Shown here one piece after another: positions 14,712 to 33,080 of a stretch of 64,000 nt of DNA. Origin of the DNA: Utricularia gibba (Eukaryota > Plantae > Magnoliophyta); assembly GCA_002189035.1 (NCBI GenBank), contig CM007990.1, positions 806,001 to 870,000 of the forward strand, in the 5' to 3' direction. Positions within the stretch are counted from its first letter, which is position 1. Each line of letters starts with the position of its first letter. Position numbers and translations under genes: made by a program. The notes under the pieces are model-generated. The model was not told the DNA's origin. It did no database searches and was given only the letters and a program-made list of their open reading frames with translations.

Positions 14712-15082
14712 TATTCCTTCTGCAAGCCCCCTTTCATGATGGAGATATGCCGTCCCTGGTCATGAGTTCTCTTCTCCAAGCCGTTGTGCAGACCGCCACA
14801 GTCCTCCATGGAGCTCCCGCTCCTGCTATCTTCATCATGTCCCTCGCGTCTCTCGTGGCCTACGCAACCAGCCATGCGGCGGCGATGAGATTACGTCGGG
14901 TGCTTGGTTGCAAAGGCATGAGGGACACGAGGAACTTGATGGAGACTGCAGGAGCGCAGCTCGGTGGAGGACTTTGGTGGGCTGTAGAACGGCTTGGAGA
15001 AGAGAAGTTACGATATATTGAGTGATGAATTTGAATATATTCATCAGTTTCTCCGTCATGGAGGCGGCGGCTTGCAGATGGA
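14712..15082 (+). repeat. Unit U2 hairpin 1: fold-back of gene Z sequence
   Basis: TTCTCTTCTCCAAGCCGTT pairs with AACGGCTTGGAGAAGAGAA. The stem continues with mismatches to GCAACCA/TGGTTGC; loop ~14874-14901. Confidence 0.9.
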
Positions 15083-17001: not shown

Positions 17002-17463
17002 TCACGCCGGCGCGGCGTCCGCCGTTGCGTCGTCATCTTGCCAACTCCTAGCCTTGTGGTAAATGCGCCGGACGTTTTCCCAATTCACGACGGCGAAGGT
17101 GGGCGGCGAGAGCACCAGGGGGACGTAGAAGGAGTAGTGGGGAGAGACGAAGAGGGAGAAGAAGGAAAGGGTTGCGACGATTGCCGAAAATGAAGCTGGA
17201 AGAAACATCAGCTCGTCCAACGGCGGCCATATCCCGTTCAGGGCATCGATTGTCCAAAACGCGAAGAAATTGGCGATGAAGAGTCTCATCATGGGGACCT
17301 GCAGAGGGTCTATCCCCCGTATTTGGTATGTCACCAGAAGGATACCCAGCGGGATCGGAATCAACCTCCCCGTGACGATCTTGAACACCTCCCGCAGCGC
17401 CTTTATCATCTTCGGACCCCTCGGAGGGTTCCCTTTCTCGGCCTCCGGCGGCGGAGCTCCCAT
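17002..17463 (-). CDS. Gene X-A: intact intronless 153-aa hydrophobic protein (predicted 3-4 TM), function unknown
   Basis: Complete ATG-to-TGA ORF with TATATATAA ~80 nt upstream (17541-17551). It is colinear with X-B with mostly conservative substitutions. Confidence 0.8.
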   Translation of the reverse strand: MGAPPPEAEKGNPPRGPKMIKALREVFKIVTGRLIPIPLGILLVTYQIRGIDPLQVPMMRLFIANFFAFWTIDALNGIWPPLDELMFLPASFSAIVATLSFFSLFVSPHYSFYVPLVLSPPTFAVVNWENVRRIYHKARSWQDDDATADAAPA

Positions 17464-23031: not shown

Positions 23032-23478
23032 TCACACTGGAGGCGACGGCGGCTCGGAATCCACAGCTCCCTCTTCCCTTTTGGCGACCTTGTGATAAAG
23101 CACTCGCATGGTTTCCCAGTTCGAGAGGACGAAGATCGGCGGAGAGAGCACGAGGGGTATGTAGGAGGAGTACCGGGGAGGTGCAAACAGAGAAAGGAAG
23201 GAAAGGGTTGCAGCGATGGCGGAGAAGGAAGCAGGGAGGAGCATCAGCTCGTCCCATGACGGGGAGTAGACGCCGCTCAGGGCGTCGATTATCCAGTAGG
23301 CGAAGAACATGGCAAGGAAGAGCCGCATCATCGGAACCTGAACAGGATCCACCCCTTTTACTTGATACGTTACCAGAAGGATCCCCAATGGGATCGGAAT
23401 CAGACGCCCCGTGATTTCCTTGAACACCGCCCGCAACGCCTTCATCGTCGACGGCCTGGATTTCGCCGTCCGCCGCAT
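23032..23478 (-). CDS. Gene X-B: intact intronless 148-aa paralog of X-A
   Basis: The first ATG is at 23478 (the ORF track begins at a TTG). Translation is MRRTAKSRPSTMKALRAVFKEITGRLIPIPLGILLVTYQ...PPSPPV*, with a TATATA element ~80 nt upstream (~23556-23562). Confidence 0.8.
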   Translation of the reverse strand: MRRTAKSRPSTMKALRAVFKEITGRLIPIPLGILLVTYQVKGVDPVQVPMMRLFLAMFFAYWIIDALSGVYSPSWDELMLLPASFSAIAATLSFLSLFAPPRYSSYIPLVLSPPIFVLSNWETMRVLYHKVAKREEGAVDSEPPSPPV

Positions 23479-24425
23479 CAACCAGGGCCTGAAATCGAGG
23501 ATCAGAAGGGAAGAAAGGATGTACAGTGTGGCCTTTCTTCGCCGTGTTGGGTTCAATATATAGGTAGATAGGAGGAAGAAGAAACTCTAGACAGAGGGAT
23601 CTGGTGGGGGATGGGAATCATCCCCCATACCTCTACATTTATCTCACCTTCACTCCAGCCTTTTCTCCTTGCTTCAGCTCAAGTTGAAATAAACTAAACT
23701 ACATTCAATGCTGCAAACGAGAGAAGGAATGACTCGCAGCAAAGGAAGCATTGAAAATGAAGACATGAGGAAGTACCCGGGGATGGTACTTCGAATGCAA
23801 AATACTTATCACATTTGTTGATCAATTGTGGGGAAGACGAGATCTGCTCCTTTAATTCAACACACTCAAATTATTAGAACAAACAATCACGACGTTATTT
23901 TAAAATAAAATAATCAATTATATGAAAAATTATATATCATATTAATCAATTAAATTTAATATTTTTAATGTGATATATGTATTTTTATATATTTAGATTT
24001 TAGGTATGTTTATCTATTCATCAAATTCTTCATTTGAATAAGAAGAAAGTCAAAAGATCAGGATGGCAAATATCATAATAAAATCAAGAAACGTCGACCT
24101 ATCCGCAATTAAATGAAACCTGCACAAGCGAAAGGTCATGGCCAATCCACGTCGGCCATCTATTATTTACCAATTTTTACGTAAATTTTTTTTTCAAACA
24201 CTCTTTAAAAATACATATAATATGGACGACAAAATATGTTAGATACAAAATTAATTTAAAAATTTTATTAAAAAGCTGTAAAATAATTAATTAAATCAAT
24301 TTATGAAACATTTTTTTATTATTTAAACGTATTATTAACGTATTTTATTTTAATAATTTATTACTGTTATTATATTAATGTAATATGTATTATGTATATA
24401 CGTAATGCTATTGTTATTTTTTTGT

Positions 24426-26490
24426 TATAAAAACACTAGGGTTTGGACAGTGTATCCTCATCCACAACACTCCTCCAGGACAAACCTTCCCGGTGACCGT
24501 GGAGGCCGTAATCGCCTCCTATTCCTTCTGCGGGAGGTGTTCAAAACACTCTGCAGGTCTCCAGGATGAATTTCTTTGCGTATTGGATGATCGATGTCCT
24601 GAACGGAATATGGCCGCAGTTCAACGAGCTTCTGATAAATGACAAGAATGGTTTCCCAGTTCGCGGGGGTGAAGATCGGGGGAGAGCACGGGTTGGAAAT
24701 TTGGTGTTGGAGAAGAGCTGTGTGTGGAGAGTGGTTTAGAAAGAGTACCGTCGATGTGCGAAAATAGGGAGGAAGAAAAGGCTTCCCGTGATTCGAGGGA
24801 GGAACATCAACTCCTCCCACCGTCCAAGGCGCTGCGGGAGGTGTTCATCACGGAACCTGTTTCCCGTCTCCACGATGAAACTATTCATCGCTGAATTCTT
24901 CGCGATTTGGATGATCGATGCCCTGAACGGGATAGGGCCGCCGTTTGACGGCCTTCTGGTAAGCGATATGAATGGTTTACCAGATCAAGAGGAGGAAGAT
25001 CGGTGGGGAGAGCAGGAGCGGTGCGTAGAAGGAGTACCGCTGAGGTGCGAAGAGAGAGAGGAATGAAAGGCTTCCGGTGATTCCTGAGAAGGAAGCAGGG
25101 AGGAGCCGATGGAAAGTAGATCCACCCTTTCTCCCCTACCGATCCTCGATTTCGTACCCTTTTACATCGGCTCCTAACTGCTTCCCAACAAGACTTGTAG
25201 TATTTTAATTATGAGTGCTCAGAAACTGATGAATATATTCAAATTCATTACTCAATATGTCATGAGTTCCCTTCTCCAAACCGTTGTGCAGCCTACGACA
25301 GTTCTCTATCGAGCTCCCGCTCCGGCTGTCTTCATCATGTCCCTCAGTCTCTCCTGACCTACGCCAGCATCATGCGGCGGCGCGCGCGATTCTGTTGGGT
25401 GCATGGTTGCGTAGGCCATGAGAGACGAGGAATATGATGAAGACCGCAGGAGCATAGCTCGGTGGAGACTATGGCGGGCTGCACAACGCTTTGGAGAAGA
25501 GAACTCATGACTGGGACAACAAATTGAGTGATGAATTGGAATGTGCTTATCAGTTTCTCCGTCATGGAGGGGGGGCTTGCAGAAGGAAACGGAACCTTCC
25601 GAGGGGTTCGAAGATGATGAAGGCGCTGCGGGAGGTGTTCAAAACCCTCTTTCACGTCTCCATGATGAAACTATTCATCTCTAATTTCTTCGCGTTTTGG
25701 ATGATCGATGTCCTGAACGGGATATGACCGCCGTTGAACGACCTGCTGATAAACGACATGCAAGGTTTGCCAGTTCAAGAGGACGAAGATCATGTGCGAA
25801 GAGAGAGAGGAATGAAAGGCTTCCGGTGATTCCTGAAAAGGAAGCAAGGAGGAGCCGATGGAAAGTAGACGCTGCTCAGGGCGTCTAATATCCAGTAAGC
25901 GAGGAAATGCCAAGGAAGAGCTCATTGGGACTTCAAGAGGTCCACTGCTTTTACGTCGTAGTTGCCATATGGATCTTCAGCGGGATCGGAATCAAACTCC
26001 CGGTGACTGCTTTGGAAACCTCCCCAACGCCTTCATCTTCAAGGGGATCCACCCCTTCTGATGAGGGCGTTGAGGGGAGGTTTTCAAAGCAGTCACCAGG
26101 CGTCTGATTCCGATCACACTGGGGATCCTTATGGCAACTTATGACGTAAAAGCACTGGATAAGTCCCAATGATAGGCTTTTCCTTGTCCTTTCCTCGCTT
26201 ACTCGATAATAGACGCCCGGAAGGCGTCTACTTTCCATCGGATCTTCCATGCTTCCTCCTCCGCAATCGCAGCAACCCTCTCCTTCCTTCCTCTCTTTGC
26301 AGCTCCCCGGAACTCCTCTTACGTACCCGTCGTGTTCTCCCCGCCGATCTTCGTCGTCTCGAGATGGGAAACCATTCGTCATTTATCAGAAGGACAAGGC
26401 TAGGAGTAGGGAAGATGATGACGTGGTGGTGGACGGCGCGCCGCCACCCTCTCCGGTGTAACCCGCCGGCGATACTATTTTTCAATTAGG
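24426..26490 (+). repeat. Unit U3: promoter cassette plus chimeric X/Z array. Includes a Z hairpin (25221-25558) and an X hairpin (25735-26037 / 26060-26400).
   Basis: TATAAAAA at 24426. AGAAACTGAT..CTCAAT pairs with ATTGAG..ATCAGTTTCT. AACGCCTTCATC/GATGAGGGCGTT closes a 22-nt loop. Confidence 0.92.
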
Positions 26491-26989
26491 TCGAAATATC
26501 TAACAACACTATCTCCTTAAATATCTAACTTTGTTCTGTTCCTATTTGCCGAACATGCAATATCAAAAGGATGTTTTAAATTCAAAAACTATCAAGCAAT
26601 ACTATAACAGAATAGAATTTAACCTTAGCTTAGGACCTGTTATATGTTATAAATTTATTGGAGTTATTCTATTTAATTTTTTAATATTTTAATCTTTAGC
26701 CATTTTGTAATAAAATCAGAAATTTTGAATTTATTGAATCTATTTTTTCTAAATAAGAGATTCACTTTTTGATAATAGATTAATTGAATCTTTAGACATT
26801 TTTCTAAATAAGAGATTAATTAGAAAAAATATAATATTTATTTTTTATATATTGTAAAAATATATTTATATCATAAAAATAAATTATATAATAATTTAAT
26901 ATATTAAACTTTACAATATATATTTAAGTTTATTAAATTTTATAATATAATTTTATGTTATATTATAAAACTTTATGAGTGTCGAATAC

Positions 26990-27100
26990 CATTTCAGCAA
27001 TAATATCTTTACTGTTGATCCAAGGCTGGCTACTGCACTCTGGAGGAGAAACTTATCTTTGGCATGTCCTGAGGCGCCTCTTTTTGTGCTTGCATTGTAA
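26990..27100 (-). pseudogene. VAP27: Single relic exon of a VAP27/PVA (VAMP-associated, MSP domain) gene
   Basis: AG|TT ACA ATG CAA GCA CAA AAA GAG GCG CCT CAG GAC ATG..AAA GAT AAG TTT CTC CTC CAG AGT..GCT GAA ATG|GT reads VTMQAQKEAPQDM(qc)KDKFLLQSAVAS..KDIIAEM, with two small deletions. Confidence 0.88.
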
Positions 27101-27159
27101 CTTAAGTACATAGAAAAAGAATCAGAAAACCCTAAACTGCTAACAGTCAAACACGAGTA

Positions 27160-27600
27160 CACTCGAATACCCGCGTCATCGGACAACAATATTTATGAAA
27201 CTCCATGCTTTCGATACACATGCCATGAGTGGAAGAATTACATATGTAAGAAATTTTACTATGTGAACTGTAAAGAGATTCAGGTGTTATCAGACAACAA
27301 TCTTTACAGAATTTTATGCTTCGGATAGACATGCCATGAATAAAAGAATTACAGATGTAAGAAATTTTACTATGTGAACTGTAAAGAGATTCAGGTGTTA
27401 TCAGACAACAATCTTTACAGAATTTTATGCTTCGGATAGACATGCCATGAATAAAAGAATTACAGATGTAAGAAATTTTACTATAGATTTACATGTCATC
27501 ATACAATAATCTTTATGAAACTCCGTGCTTTCCATAAACATACCATGAGTGGAAGAATTACAGATATAAGGAAGTTCACTATGTAAACAAAAAACATAAT
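27160..27600. repeat. Tandem repeat with 111-bp period, ~3.5-4 copies
   Basis: GTAAGAAATTTTACTA recurs at 27246, 27357 and 27468. The two central copies are nearly identical and the outer copies are degenerate. Confidence 0.92.
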
Positions 27601-28181
27601 GTTGCTGATACAAAAATCGCAAAAACAAAAATCTTGTATGTGTATTCTCTTCTATTACAACAAAAAGGATAATAAGGCAAGTTGTAGACAGTAGCTTTTA
27701 TAGACACAAAGCATAACAAACTTCATACGAAAATAGAATCTAATAAGATTATGTTTCAGATCTCAATAGTATAATTAAACCTGCGAAATGCTGATCGAGT
27801 TGCTCACTTCCAACGGCTGTATAGCTTTTATTACTCGGTATTATTTCAATATTCCAAGATTATCTTTTAGCTTAACATGAACTTGTTCAAGCACGTAATC
27901 CCCGCTTGATACGTGTAGCAGATATTCTTGAAACGTATCTCAAACACCCTAATTTGGTCAGCTTTGATTGGGAGAACATTCCAAGTCTTAGCAAGCTTTT
28001 TAAAAAAAAAAAAAATCTAAATGAATGATTTTTTTTTTAAAAATGAATTATAAATTTATGAAATATTTTTTATTATTTAAATGTATTATTTATGTATTAT
28101 ATTTTCATAATTTATTACTGTAATTATATTAATGTAATATATATATTATGCATTTACGTAATGTTATTGTTATTTTTTTGT

Positions 28182-29190
28182 TATAAAAACTGTAGGGCTT
28201 CGACAGTGCATCCTCATCCACAACACTCCTCCAGGACAAACCTTCCCGGTGACCGTGGATGCCGTAATCGCCTCCTATTCCTTCTGCGGGAGGTGTTCAA
28301 AACACTCTGCAGGTCTCCAGGATGAATTTCTTCGCGTTTTGGATGATCGATGTCCTGCACGGGATATGCCTGCAGGCTGCGGTTGGACGACCTTCTGATA
28401 AATGACACGAATGTTTTCCCAGTCGCGGGGATGAAGATTGGGGGAAAGAGCTGGAGCGGTACGAAGAAGACGTCCCGCTGAGGTGCGAAGAGAGATCGGA
28501 AGGTAAGGGCCCCAGTTATTAGTGAGCAGGAAGCAGGGAGGAGCATCCACTCCTACAACCATGGAAAATAGACGCTGCTCAAAGCGTCTATTACCCAGAA
28601 AAGAAAGAACATGATGAGAAAAACCCTCATTCTGGGGACTTCAAAGGGGATCCAACAGTTTTACGTCATATTTGACTAGAAGGATCCCCAAAGGGATCAG
28701 AATCAAACGGTCGACGAGTGCTCTTGAAACCTACCGCAAGTCCCTCATCGAACGTTTGATTTTGATCCCTTTGGGGATCCTTCTAGTCAAATATGACGTA
28801 AAAGGGGGGATCCCCTTGAAGTCCCTATGGTGAGGCTCCTCCTCATCATGTTCCTTGTTTTCTGGGTAATGGACGCCTTGAGCAGCGTCTATTTTCCATC
28901 GCGGGGAGGAATGGATGCTTCTCCCTGCTTCCTGGTCACTAATCACTGGATCCCTTTCCTTCCGATCTCCCTTGTACCGCTCCTGCTCTCTCCCCCCATC
29001 TTCATCCTCACGAACTCGGAAACCATTCGTGTCATTTATCAGAAGGACAGGGCTAAAAGTAGGGAAGATGATGACGCGGTATTGGACGACACGCCGCCGC
29101 CCTCTCCGGTGTAACCCGCCGGCGGTACTATTTTTCAATTAGCTTTAATTCAAACTTTTTCACAAACAACAAATAATTTGCATATTCATA
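28182..29190 (+). repeat. Unit U4: promoter cassette plus X hairpin (arms 28383-28709 / 28753-29046)
   Basis: TATAAAAA at 28182. A perfect 41-bp stem (28659-28699 / 28763-28803) and a perfect 23-bp stem (28391-28413 / 29024-29046) flank a ~43-nt loop. Confidence 0.94.
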
Positions 29191-29269
29191 CATTAATGCA
29201 AGATGAATTTCTTTGCGTTTTGGATGATCGATGTCCTGAACGGGAAATGCCTGCAGGCTGCAGTTGGAC

Positions 29270-29658
29270 GACCTTCTGATAAGGACACGAATGGTTTCCC
29301 AGTCGCGGGGATGAAGATTGGGGAAAGAGCAGGAGCGGTACGTAGAAGGCATCCCGCTGAGGTGCGAAGAGTGCGATAAAGGAAAGGGTTCCAGTGATTA
29401 CTGAGAAGGAAGCAGGGAGACGCATCAACTCCTCCCACGATGAAAAGTAGACGCTGCTCAGGGCGTCTATTATCCAGAACCCAAAAAACATGATGAGGAA
29501 GAGCCTCATCAATGGAACTTGAACAGGATCCACACCTTTTTCTTGATATGTTACGAGAAGGATCCCAGTGGGATCGGAATCAAACGCTCCATGATTGCCT
29601 TGAACACCTCCCGCAGCTCCCTCATAGTCAGCGGGTAGGGTTTCGCACTGCTCGCCAT
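29270..29658 (-). pseudogene. Gene X-C: frameshifted paralog whose 3' end is fused to an inverted X-A-type fragment (29200-29270)
   Basis: MASSAKPYPLTMRELREVFKAIMERLIPIPLG^ILLVTYQEKGVDPVQVPLMRLF..., with a 1-nt deletion at ~29568 and a second shift near 29325. Confidence 0.85.
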
Positions 29659-29665
29659 CCAGGCA

Positions 29666-29758
29666 GAATCAGGGTATGAAATACGAGTTCAGGAGAGGAG
29701 AAATGATATGCGGAATCAGGGTAGAAATACAAGTTCAGGAGAGGAGAAATGACGCGCG
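29666..29758. repeat. Tandem duplication 2 x ~47 bp immediately upstream of X-C
   Basis: GAATCAGGGTA..AAATAC.AGTTCAGGAGAGGAGAAATGA starts at 29666 and 29713. Confidence 0.9.
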
Positions 29759-30393
29759 TGGTAACGTTTTTTTGGGTTCGCCTTCGCGTATTACATAGGC
29801 GGAGGGTCAGTTATGGTATAACTGTGGCGTTCTTGATTCAGTTCAGGAAATGAATCAAAACCTTGTGGGCGAAGTTAAGCCATCTTGTTTCAATTTTGGA
29901 TATGATGAGGACACTTAGTCAAATCTCTCGCAACGTTTTCATATCGACTAGTTGGATTTCATATGCTGCGCAATAATATGTAGCGAAAAAGGTTAGGTGA
30001 ATGCTGGGGTGGTCATTTCTGAGAAAATGAAAGCAGAAATAGCAAACCGGAACGACTTCACCCCAGTCGAAGACCCCACCGTGCCACAGAAGTCATGGGG
30101 TTTGAATGCGGTAGTTTTTCGGGCTCGAACGAAGTGAGAGGTAGGGAGAGCTCGAAAAAAGCCGAGGAACGAAGTGGCTCGACGATAGGGAGAGAACGCG
30201 ACGAAGTCGAAAAAATGCATACTAGGTATTTTTTAAAAACACTCGTTCATTGGGTGTTGCGTGGCATGCCTGTAGGGTTTTTTTTAAAAAAATACCCATT
30301 GCATTTTAAGTGTGTTAAAAATATAATCACGCTATATGCATAGTGTGTGAGAGAGAAATACACTAGTTAGTGATGAGTCGGCTTCTAAAAGAT

Positions 30394-30814
30394 TGTTAAT
30401 ATGACACATTCTGAAAAGCGGCCGGATTACGGCATAACAGACGGCCGATATCTGAAAAGCGAGATCGTATAGCAGTTGTAGAAATCAACCGATATTTGCA
30501 AACGTCAGGATTCGACCAGATTGAGCTCTTCTATAAATAGAAGAAATCATTACGCAGAAAGGGTTGAATTCTAAGAACTATTCAACTTGTATCATCTTCT
30601 TCGCCATCTCCATCTAGTGGAAATCTTCTTCGGCGAGGTCCGATAGCTCCGTGGTTTTTCTGTACTCCGGCGATTTCCAGATAAAAATCTCCACTTACTC
30701 TTGTTTCAACCGATCAAACCGAACCAATCACGAAAAACACTTAAGTGCGATATTCCCGATCGCACCTATCATACTAAATCGGCTTCTTTCAGGATACCAA
30801 TTTTACTCATAACA
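30394..30814 (+). mobile_element. Possible solo LTR, ~420 bp
   Basis: TGTTA...TAACA termini with an internal CTATAAATAG. No perfect TSD (AAGAT/TTTAG). Confidence 0.5.
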
Positions 30815-31733
30815 TTTAGATTTAAAAAACACCTCATGCCTAGAGCATCGAGTTCATGACGTACTCATATTCACACCTATTTACCGTTATTCAGGGGGGA
30901 GGCCCCCCACGTGTGCATAGGTTTTTGAGTTTCTCAATCACTTTTAAAAATCAATGTGATCTAACCAATTAAAACTTGTACATACGAGATACTTAATTCA
31001 TTCTCAGATCCAAGGATTAAAGGAATATTATTCCATATAAATTAATTTAAATTGATTTCAACTAGCAATATAGAATTACACATCTATTCTCCAATTCAAC
31101 GGTATTTGCCTTTTATTGCTCAGCATTAATTTAAATTGTACCATTAAACCTGAGGTGCAACTCAACATTGAAGTATAAATATGAATTGAAACCAAACGTG
31201 TAAAAGTAGTTTTTGTGTCATGAATATTACAATATCTCTCTCAACCATTGCTCCCCAAGTCCTTCAGTGCATAGCTTCAAGTTAGGAAGCTCAAAACTAG
31301 GCTAGGCTTCAAATTCAGATTCTATAAAACGTCTCCTCCTTTCAAGTCGCCAACAAGAACAAGAAATGGAAAAGATATTAAAAACTTTTTCGGTCGCCGG
31401 TGGCGGATCCCCGTCGAACACTTTGTGAGAACGACGAAAGGGAGAGAAGAGACCCGGTTTTTTTTTTTTTTCATCTTCAATTATTTAACAATTTTTAACG
31501 CAACGACGCAATATGTTTTCATTTTTTAAAACACAAACTAAATTAAAATTCTATTAAAAACTCTAAACTAATTAATTAAATCAATTTATAAAAAGATTTA
31601 ATTATAAATTTATGAAATATTTTTTTCATTATTTTAACGTATTATTAACATATTTTATTTTAATAATTTATTACTGTTATTATATTAATGTAATATATAT
31701 TATGTATTTACGTAATGTTATTGTTTTTTTTGT

Positions 31734-33080
31734 TATAAAAGCACTAGGGTTTGGACCGTGCATCCTCATCCACAACACTGCTCCAGGACAAACCTTCCCG
31801 GTGACCGTGGACGCCGCCATCGTCTCCTATTCCTTCTGCAGGTCTCCAGGATGAATTTCTTTGCGTTTTGGGTGATCGATGCCCTGAACCGGATATGGCC
31901 GCAGTTGGACGACCTTCCGATAAACGACAGGAATGGTTTCCCAGTTCTTGAGGATGAAGACGGTGGAAGAGAGGAGGAGCGGTAGGTAGATGGCGTACCG
32001 CTGAGGTGCGAAGAGAGCGATAAAGGAAAGGGTTCCAGTGATTGATGAAAAGGAAGGAGGGAGGAGCATCCACTCCACCCACGATGGAAAATAGACGCTG
32101 CTCAAGGCGTCCATTACCCAGAAAACAAAGAACATGATGAGGAAGAGCTTCATCATGGGGACTTCAAAGGGGATCCACCCCTTTTTACATCGCAGTTTAC
32201 GAGAAGGATCCCCAATGGGATCAGGATGAAACGATCCATGAGCGTTTTAGAAACCTCCCGCAACGCCCGCATAGTCAATGGGCAGGGAACCGCACTGCAC
32301 GCCATCTAGGATGAATCGGGGCTTGAAATTGAGGATCAGAAAAGGGATCCACCCAATTCTTTCCTCGCACAGTACGAAACCCAACGCGTCGACGGTGAAG
32401 GCGTTAGGGGAGGTTTCTAAAGCGGTCACAGATCGTTTGATCCCGCTCCCATTGGGGATCCTTCTGGTAAACTGCGATGCGAAAAGGGGTGGATCCCCTT
32501 GAAGTCCTGATAAAGGAAGATCCAATGTGCCCACACTCAAGGCAGTAGAATATGACCGTTAAAGAATAATTGTTCATGTATTTAAATAGAATTGCAGTGT
32601 ACAAAAACTCATGGAATGAATGAGAACTCACTTCTTCCTCCTCTGTATTTGCTGCTTCCTGTTTCCACATCCGTGTAGATTGGTTTCTTATCAAGTCCCC
32701 ATGATGAGGCTCTTCCTCATCATGTTCTTTGTTTTCTGGGTAATGGACGCCTTGAGCAGTGTCTACTTTCCGTCGTGGGAGAAGTTGATGCTCCTCCCTG
32801 CTTCATTTTCATTAATCACTGGAAGCTTTTGCTTGATTGCTTTCTTCGCACCTCAGCGGTACGCCTTCTACGTACGGCTCCTGCTCTCTTCCCCCATCTT
32901 CATCCTCACGAACTGTGAAACCATTCGTGTCATTTATCAGAAGGACAAGGCTAGGAGTAGGGAAGAGGATGACACGGTATTGGAAGCCACGCGCCGCCCT
33001 CTCCCGCCGGCGGTACTATTTTTCAATTAGCTTTAATTCAAACTTTTTCACAAACAACAAATAATTTGTATATTCATACC
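31734..33080 (+). repeat. Unit U5: promoter cassette plus X hairpin (arms ~31905-32260 / 32395-32944)
   Basis: TATAAAA at 31734 and the same leader as U3/U4. The antisense arm runs through an X-C-type ATG. The 3' tail is shared with U4 (29110-29190). Confidence 0.92.
32508..32693. mobile_element. 186-bp solo LTR (Copia/TRIM-sized) inserted in the right arm of U5
   Basis: TGATAA...TTATCA termini with a perfect 5-bp TSD AGTCC (32503-32507 and 32694-32698). Confidence 0.85.

Follow-up and report, generated by a model that had tools for sequence, protein, structure and literature searches.

The X locus and its intact genes

The window analysed here is a 64,000-nucleotide (nt) stretch of the Utricularia gibba genome (assembly GCA_002189035.1, contig CM007990.1, forward-strand positions 806,001 to 870,000), and all coordinates given below count from its first letter. 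It has the appearance of plant nuclear DNA and holds two intact copies of a small gene, referred to as X, together with degenerate copies arranged head to head as fold-backs, of which the units U3, U4 and U5 are the subject of this work. An original prediction, made from the sequence alone, had stated that the two arms of each X hairpin share substitutions absent from sibling hairpins and from the intact genes, and had offered intra-hairpin gene conversion, compensatory selection or repeated re-creation of the fold-back as possible causes. As argued below, copying between the arms at the DNA level, following the tandem duplication of an ancestral fold-back, is probably the best explanation for these hairpins. 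The intact genes are as follows.

17002–17463, minus strand: intact gene X-A, a 153-residue open reading frame (ORF) taken from the ORF list, encoding a small orphan membrane protein.
23032–23445, minus strand: intact gene X-B, 137 residues counted from MKALR, placed by the ORF list and the blastn map.

Both genes consist of a single exon and encode small hydrophobic proteins, which are 66% identical to each other. X-B, which carries GTAACGTATCAAGTAAAA at 23356–23373, served as the reference for gene coordinates, with the ATG at 256 and the stop at 669 of the segment read from 23700 to 22900. Pfam contains no family for X, and a word-indexed search of 5.8 billion proteins found no relatives of it. 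An exhaustive profile search of 1.84 billion proteins returned for X just two unrelated repetitive proteins, and two metagenome scans at the Joint Genome Institute (JGI) for loci related to X gave no matches. Atlas proposed unnamed Streptophyta clusters at 0.90, which can be taken as a lead only. The X genes seem to form an orphan family confined to one lineage, with local amplification and rearrangement of its members.

Architecture of the fold-backs

The arms were mapped by blastn in X-B gene coordinates, and all copies were then aligned. The X hairpins proved to be the loop-proximal parts of whole-gene, head-to-head fold-backs of gene X. In each unit an X-A-like fragment in sense orientation comes first, followed by the left arm, which is an inverted X copy, and then by the right arm, a sense X copy with a tail of its own. 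The elements are listed here from left to right.

24941–25120, minus strand: pre3, which duplicates the outer part of the U3 left arm in direct orientation (95–98% alike).
25794–26045, minus strand: U3 left arm (U3L), X-B coordinates 520 to 247, from the blastn map and the alignment; the inner hairpin arm noted earlier corresponds to 25940–26045.
26040–26062, no strand: U3 centre with the GGGGATCCACCCC fragment, read directly from the sequence, at the tip of the predicted fold.
26047–26463, plus strand: U3 right arm (U3R), a near full-length X copy, X-B coordinates 240–671.
28000–28400, plus strand: AT-rich upstream cassette of U4.
28325–28393, plus strand: X-A-like sense fragment, adjoining the left arm at the common inversion junction.
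28383–28750, minus strand: U4 left arm (U4L), X-B coordinates 620 to 254.
28753–29116, plus strand: U4 right arm (U4R), X-B coordinates 295–671.
29264–29707, minus strand: SOLO, a left-type X copy without a partner arm.
31905–32341, minus strand: U5 left arm (U5L), X-B coordinates 620 to 194.
32375–32511, plus strand: U5 right arm (U5R), inner piece, X-B coordinates 236–371.
32502–32692, no strand: insertion of about 191 nt that divides the U5 right arm.
32681–33021, plus strand: U5 right arm, outer piece and tail, X-B coordinates 350 to the end, pairing with 31913–32164 at 89%.

The arms measure 250–440 nt and the spacers between them 25–72 nt. Further copies of the X-A-like fragment lie at 24569–24630, 25586–25748, 29206–29274 and 31854–31915, and further copies of the cassette at 24282–24637 (89%) and 31585–31922 (81%). 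All left-type copies meet the X-A-like sense fragment at one identical junction. The right arms, in turn, run past the stop, with about 50 nt and a 3' flank that extend beyond the ends of the left arms and are absent from these. The tails are 84–89% alike between units and the flanks 87–90%, while the tails are only 59–78% like X-A or X-B. With the left junction and the right tail common to the units, the architecture is older than the units themselves, and, since the left arms lack the tail and flank, the right arms are not fresh copies of the left ones. The fold-back architecture therefore arose once and was then duplicated in tandem. The idea that the units descend from a common chimera holds in so far as the left junction and the right tail are concerned; however, the breakpoints had also been described as shared, and the central ends of the arms differ by unit (247/240 in U3, 254/295 in U4 and 194/236 in U5, in X-B coordinates). 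The U4 loop (28719–28743) is an asymmetric continuation of the left arm, and a fragment similar to the GGGGATCCACCCC of the U3 centre is present at the U5 centre (32340–32366).

Likeness of partner arms near the loop

The motifs on which the original prediction was built are indeed found on both arms of their own unit. U3R reads ATGGCAACTTATGACGTAAAAGCA at 26131–26154, which U3L (25942–25965, minus strand) matches apart from a single indel and a T/C difference. In U4, AGTCAAATATGACGTAAAA is present on both arms (28659–28677 on the minus strand, 28785–28803 on the plus strand), and these segments are enclosed in a stem of 28659–28699 with 28763–28803 that is, as had been claimed, perfect over 41 base pairs (bp). 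Likewise, both U5 arms read GTAAACTGCGATG (32181–32201, minus strand; 32466–32486, plus strand). A pattern search of the 64-kb window found each motif confined to the two arms of its own unit.

The same picture emerges from the alignment as a whole. When quartet site patterns were scored as supporting grouping by unit, by orientation or across, the counts were 21:0:1 for U3/U4, 24:1:2 for U3/U5 and, without the non-homologous junction columns, 13:0:0 for U4/U5. Strictly private substitutions common to both arms number 20, while three or fewer, approximately, would be expected from independent parallel hits (our estimate from the observed divergences). Over alignment columns 92–183, partner arms are 86.6–87.6% identical and arms of different units 68–82%. 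In the tree of the inner region the arms pair by unit (support 90/87, 88/84 and 79/76), and the six arms form one clade (95/94), separate from X-B, SOLO and X-A. Over the inner 100 columns, the approximately unbiased (AU) test rejected a clade of left arms (p 7.8e-5) as well as a clade of right arms (p 4.4e-4). The perfect patches of 41 bp in U4 and 51 bp in U5 exceed in length what uniform divergence would give, with 0.13 and 0.05 such runs expected, respectively. The resemblance also extends to changes in length: a 15-nt deletion is common to U3L, U3R and pre3, and the leader has been lost in both U3 arms. For the hairpins as they were earlier delimited, the arms thus group by unit and not by orientation. 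An assembly artefact was considered as a source of this likeness and rejected, because the arms are 13–17% diverged and the U4 and U5 loops are spanned, without a single difference, by independent DNA contigs of runs X1 and X5.

The excess of arm-to-arm identity is, however, limited to the loop-proximal 100–200 nt. The claim that each arm resembles its partner more than the same arm in a sister unit is therefore upheld beside the loop, by the site patterns and the AU tests, but the effect weakens or is reversed in the outer stems, where clades by unit were rejected for U3 and U4.

A mosaic in the outer stems

The outer stems were traced by a sliding nearest-neighbour scan and by trees of individual segments. 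The AU test rejected a U3L+U3R clade over columns 260–333 (p 0.0025) and a U4L+U4R clade over columns 334–426 (p 0.0096), the groups for both of these tests having been named after the trees were seen. U3R is partner-like up to about column 259 and beyond it is nearest to X-B (84–88%), while U3L, beyond about column 260, is nearest to its direct duplicate pre3 (95–98%). U4R is nearest to the U5 arms over columns 160–259 (90–98%). Over the outer 90 columns the tree joins U4L to SOLO (96/94); U4R is 94–95% like U5R there, although the tree does not resolve these two as a pair. The whole arm is thus not fitted by a single tree, which is a signature of sequence exchange. Given the ancestral architecture, with its shared junction and shared tail, the likeness of partners near the centre must have been imposed later.

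SOLO is itself a mosaic, 92–96% like U4L in its outer 90 columns and 85–90% like X-B in its inner part, and a stretch of about 45 nt is tandemly duplicated in its leader (about 29665–29750).

The Z hairpins as an internal control

The window offers a built-in comparison in a second pair of hairpins, derived from Z, which were also duplicated as units.

25221–25558, no strand: Z-derived hairpin, copy 2, with copy 1 at 14712–15082; internal control.

Scored in the same manner, the Z hairpins gave a unit:orientation:cross count of 1:7:4, with same-orientation arms 79–82% alike and partner arms 71–80%. The Z arms group by orientation, which is the ordinary expectation when arms do not exchange sequence, so the result for X is no by-product of the method or of the locus.

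Probable copying between arms at the DNA level

These observations can be integrated in a model in which, after the duplication, one arm of each unit would have been copied onto its partner at the DNA level, mostly within the 100–250 nt beside the centre. Two candidate routes might be envisaged: intramolecular gene conversion between closely spaced inverted repeats, or else an event across the centre of the palindrome, either template switching during replication or fold-back repair. A single event of either kind could move both substitutions and deletions onto the partner arm, and the outcome would be changes that look private on both arms, perfect patches and, through deletions, unit-specific centres. 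Afterwards the arms may have decayed roughly neutrally, so that selection on an RNA stem would be unnecessary. Partial re-copying from the centre is counted within this explanation. Among the causes originally offered, it is intra-hairpin exchange that fits, in a broad sense that covers conversion, template switching and partial re-copying. Arm-to-arm conversion is known in palindromes (10.1101/800185, PMC8600007), and template switching homogenises the arms of inverted repeats and gives multibase changes that appear compensatory (PMC8794818, PMC13100816, PMC5453318).

The centre is structurally unstable, as seen from the asymmetric U4 loop and from the indels in run X4, which comes from a divergent accession. 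In X4 the U5 right arm has 39 extra nt, the reverse complement of 32302–32339 (33 matches in 38), and the loop region bears an 11-nt deletion.

Several points weigh against arm-to-arm copying, or at least against its simplest form. A Sawyer-type test of the longest concordant run in 36 pairs yielded no tract that survives correction, and the best uncorrected value (P = 0.007) belongs to a U4R–U5L tract, which is not a partner pair. No GC bias was seen in the changes shared by partners (eight from A/T to G/C and nine in the opposite sense, small counts; for single-arm changes, 22 and 30). Overall the arms are only 83–87% alike, so most of the copying would be old, and the comparison covers copies from one species. 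Finally, 9 of the 20 shared private substitutions fall within 25 columns (135–159), where only about 4 of 77 single-arm changes are found, and such clustering is not predicted by simple point mutation followed by conversion. A multibase change that arose as a cluster in one arm and was then copied to the other would fit it, as would conversion from unseen paralogues with a different sequence in this segment, which codes for a protein loop.

In each arm the inverted octamers GGGGATCC and GGATCCCC flank this variable segment, which lies between two GGATCC palindromes. Inversion of the segment between the palindromes was considered and rejected, the reverse complement having been compared by eye without a convincing match. 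Each arm may form a small stem-loop of its own with the variable segment as the loop (for example at 28675–28690 and 28640–28655, and at 32455–32500), and the palindromes also permit alternative pairings between arms. Just outside the 41-bp stem, at 28655–28658 of U4L, X4 has CGCC in place of the ACAG of the window, a four-nt cluster of differences that improves pairing with the right arm; this contig has nine differing sites in about 60 nt and may represent a paralogue, not an allele.

Alternative explanations: donors outside the hairpins and repeated re-creation

The second of these readings of the clustering leads to an alternative, considered unlikely, in which both arms of a unit were overwritten, together or separately, by ectopic conversion from different X paralogues elsewhere, with loop variants such as VKYDVK or VNCD, so that the private motifs are simply differences between paralogues. 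The shared private changes do cluster in the segment coding for the variable loop that separates the first hydrophobic stretch from the second, a region in which X-A and X-B differ as well (7 differences in columns 135–159), and the X family is mosaic, with exchanges between non-partners such as SOLO/U4L and U4R/U5L. However, the 64-kb window contains no donor, and the frame-destroying deletions common to both U3 arms are left unexplained by outside donors. Moreover, the unit-informative sites are spread 11/11/15 over the codon positions, unlike the 23/18/47 of the two intact genes and hence unlike coding-constrained divergence, although the power of this comparison is low. Single-arm changes fall 34/23/18. 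As far as such a low-power test on the sequence can tell, the hairpins appear to have diverged mostly without coding constraint.

Repeated re-creation of the fold-back, by which a left-type copy was inverted and duplicated independently in each unit and the arms are alike as young copies, is decidedly improbable. It would account for central breakpoints that differ between units, for the existence of a left-type copy with no partner (SOLO), and for the asymmetric U4 loop, which continues the left arm just as fold-back priming would leave it. Against this, the right arms share among units a tail and a 3' flank that left arms lack, and their outer parts group with each other or with X-B, not with their partners. 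In addition, the U3 and U5 centres have a GGATCCACCC fragment in common, and the X4 allele indicates that the asymmetry of U5 is a secondary deletion.

The hypothesis of selection on a hairpin RNA

A third alternative is that a functional hairpin RNA (hpRNA) or a proto-microRNA (proto-miRNA) is under selection, which maintains the pairing of the stems; the private changes would then be truly compensatory and each unit would have a small RNA of its own. This appears very unlikely. The inner hairpins are certainly predicted to be very stable (-163, -125 and -215 kcal/mol, with z-scores of -17 to -21), but any inverted repeat would show such stability. Units are preceded by an AT-rich cassette that includes a TATA-like motif, and 21-mers that match X-B perfectly were found in U5R1 (4), U5L (1) and U2R (13); in contrast, U3 and U4 have none, and no 21-mer matches X-A. 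Within the variable segment, about 5 of 18 positions distinguish the hairpins from X-B.

The mismatches themselves argue against compensation. Over all stems, those due to transitions would form G:U pairs on the plus strand in 39 cases and on the minus strand in 40, with no excess of either, and 76 of the 155 mismatches are transversions. Indels shared by the arms, such as the 15-nt deletion and the lost leader of U3, could not be produced by compensatory point changes. With the unit-specific changes also devoid of coding or structural bias, the compensatory selection that the original prediction had entertained finds no backing here.

Nor did traces of RNA activity come to light, and nothing in these results favours the original idea that a different small RNA would be emitted by each unit. 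The runs listed for U4 included none of RNA. In RNA run X10 no contig lies on the hairpins, its contigs touching only the 191-nt insertion and an unrelated repeat, although small-RNA libraries are not visible through contigs. An Rfam scan of 12–34 kb gave only generic matches to miRNA models, all under their gathering scores, the best being MIR8565 (66.7 bits, against a gathering score of 136). CpG is mildly depleted in the hairpins (0.78–0.87, compared with 0.91–1.10 in the intact genes) and C>T and G>A together account for 18 of the 76 single-arm changes; given this mild depletion and the lack of dominance of such changes, there is no mark of long, dense methylation.

Least probable of all, and only remotely so, is that the array constitutes an active hpRNA cluster, in which a payload of 18–25 nt between the two GGATCC palindromes diversifies per unit on both arms and tracks, in each unit, a different fast-evolving loop variant of X. 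If true, this would be a plant counterpart of the hpRNAs that in Drosophila suppress expanding families of selfish genes, and copying from arm to arm would be the means of changing the small interfering RNA (siRNA) while keeping the stem.

Other observations in the window

DNA run X4 lacks the insertion in the U5 right arm (about 191 nt) and joins 32501 directly to 32693. The insertion is flanked by a short imperfect duplication (..AAGTCC..), and its segment 32511–32586 matches, with six differences, an RNA contig of 720 nt that comes from elsewhere. It probably represents filler DNA or a small mobile element, and its presence probably varies among accessions. Positions 30092–30755, in the spacer that separates SOLO from U5, belong to a high-copy repeat, with a contig word depth tens to hundreds of times that of the surroundings in three DNA runs and with many loose ends. 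Between U3 and U4, in the AT-rich spacer, a sequence of about 111 nt is present four times in tandem (27175–27605).

As for the upstream cassettes, at 28185–28200, 24428–24445 and 31738–31752 they carry a TATA-like ttataaaa(a/g)c followed by (c/g)tagggtt or ctagggttt. The latter corresponds, in reverse complement, to a telo-box-like AAACCCTA(G) motif.

Comparison with known systems

Palindromes with conversion between arms have been described in the mammalian X and Y chromosomes and in the sex chromosomes of willow and poplar (10.1101/800185, PMC8600007, PMC7023750). As in these, the arms of the X fold-backs are inverted and separated by a short spacer, each is closer to its partner than to the corresponding arm of a sister copy, and they evolve in concert. 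The differences are, however, considerable. The X arms span 0.25–0.45 kb and are 83–87% alike, while those of the palindromes exceed 10 kb and 99%, and they are dead gene copies instead of expressed genes; furthermore, their homogenisation is found only near the centre, is mostly old and shows no detectable GC bias.

Closer in scale are the template-switch mutations that perfect or maintain the stems of hairpins (PMC8794818, PMC5453318, PMC10710096, PMC13100816). Copying of this sort, without selection, would be compatible with the perfect runs of 41 and 51 bp and the clustered shared changes of the X hairpins. The published cases, on the other hand, involve tens of nt and were inferred by ancestral reconstruction with outgroups, whereas the X hairpins were compared among copies of one species.

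The third likeness is with the loci of plants that give rise to hpRNAs or proto-miRNAs, to which the X fold-backs are similar in being head-to-head duplicates located near intact members of the family and in their long and stable predicted hairpin. Natural inverted-repeat silencers exist in plants, such as soybean CHS and Arabidopsis PAI, and in the model of Allen et al. (2004) plant proto-MIRNA loci are said to arise by inverted duplication of the target gene. Unlike such loci, the X arms are 20–30% diverged from the intact genes, and nothing in them indicates selection for pairing.

The X fold-backs do not reveal a new kind of system; copying from arm to arm is ordinary for inverted repeats. 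Their value lies in providing a clean, small-scale case in which changes that look compensatory probably come from the copying of DNA and not from selection on RNA, with the Z hairpins as a built-in control. This is a caution against taking covariation in young inverted-repeat loci as proof of function, and it bears on the ways in which the stems of proto-MIRNA or hpRNA precursors could be maintained, or altered, while the precursors are young.

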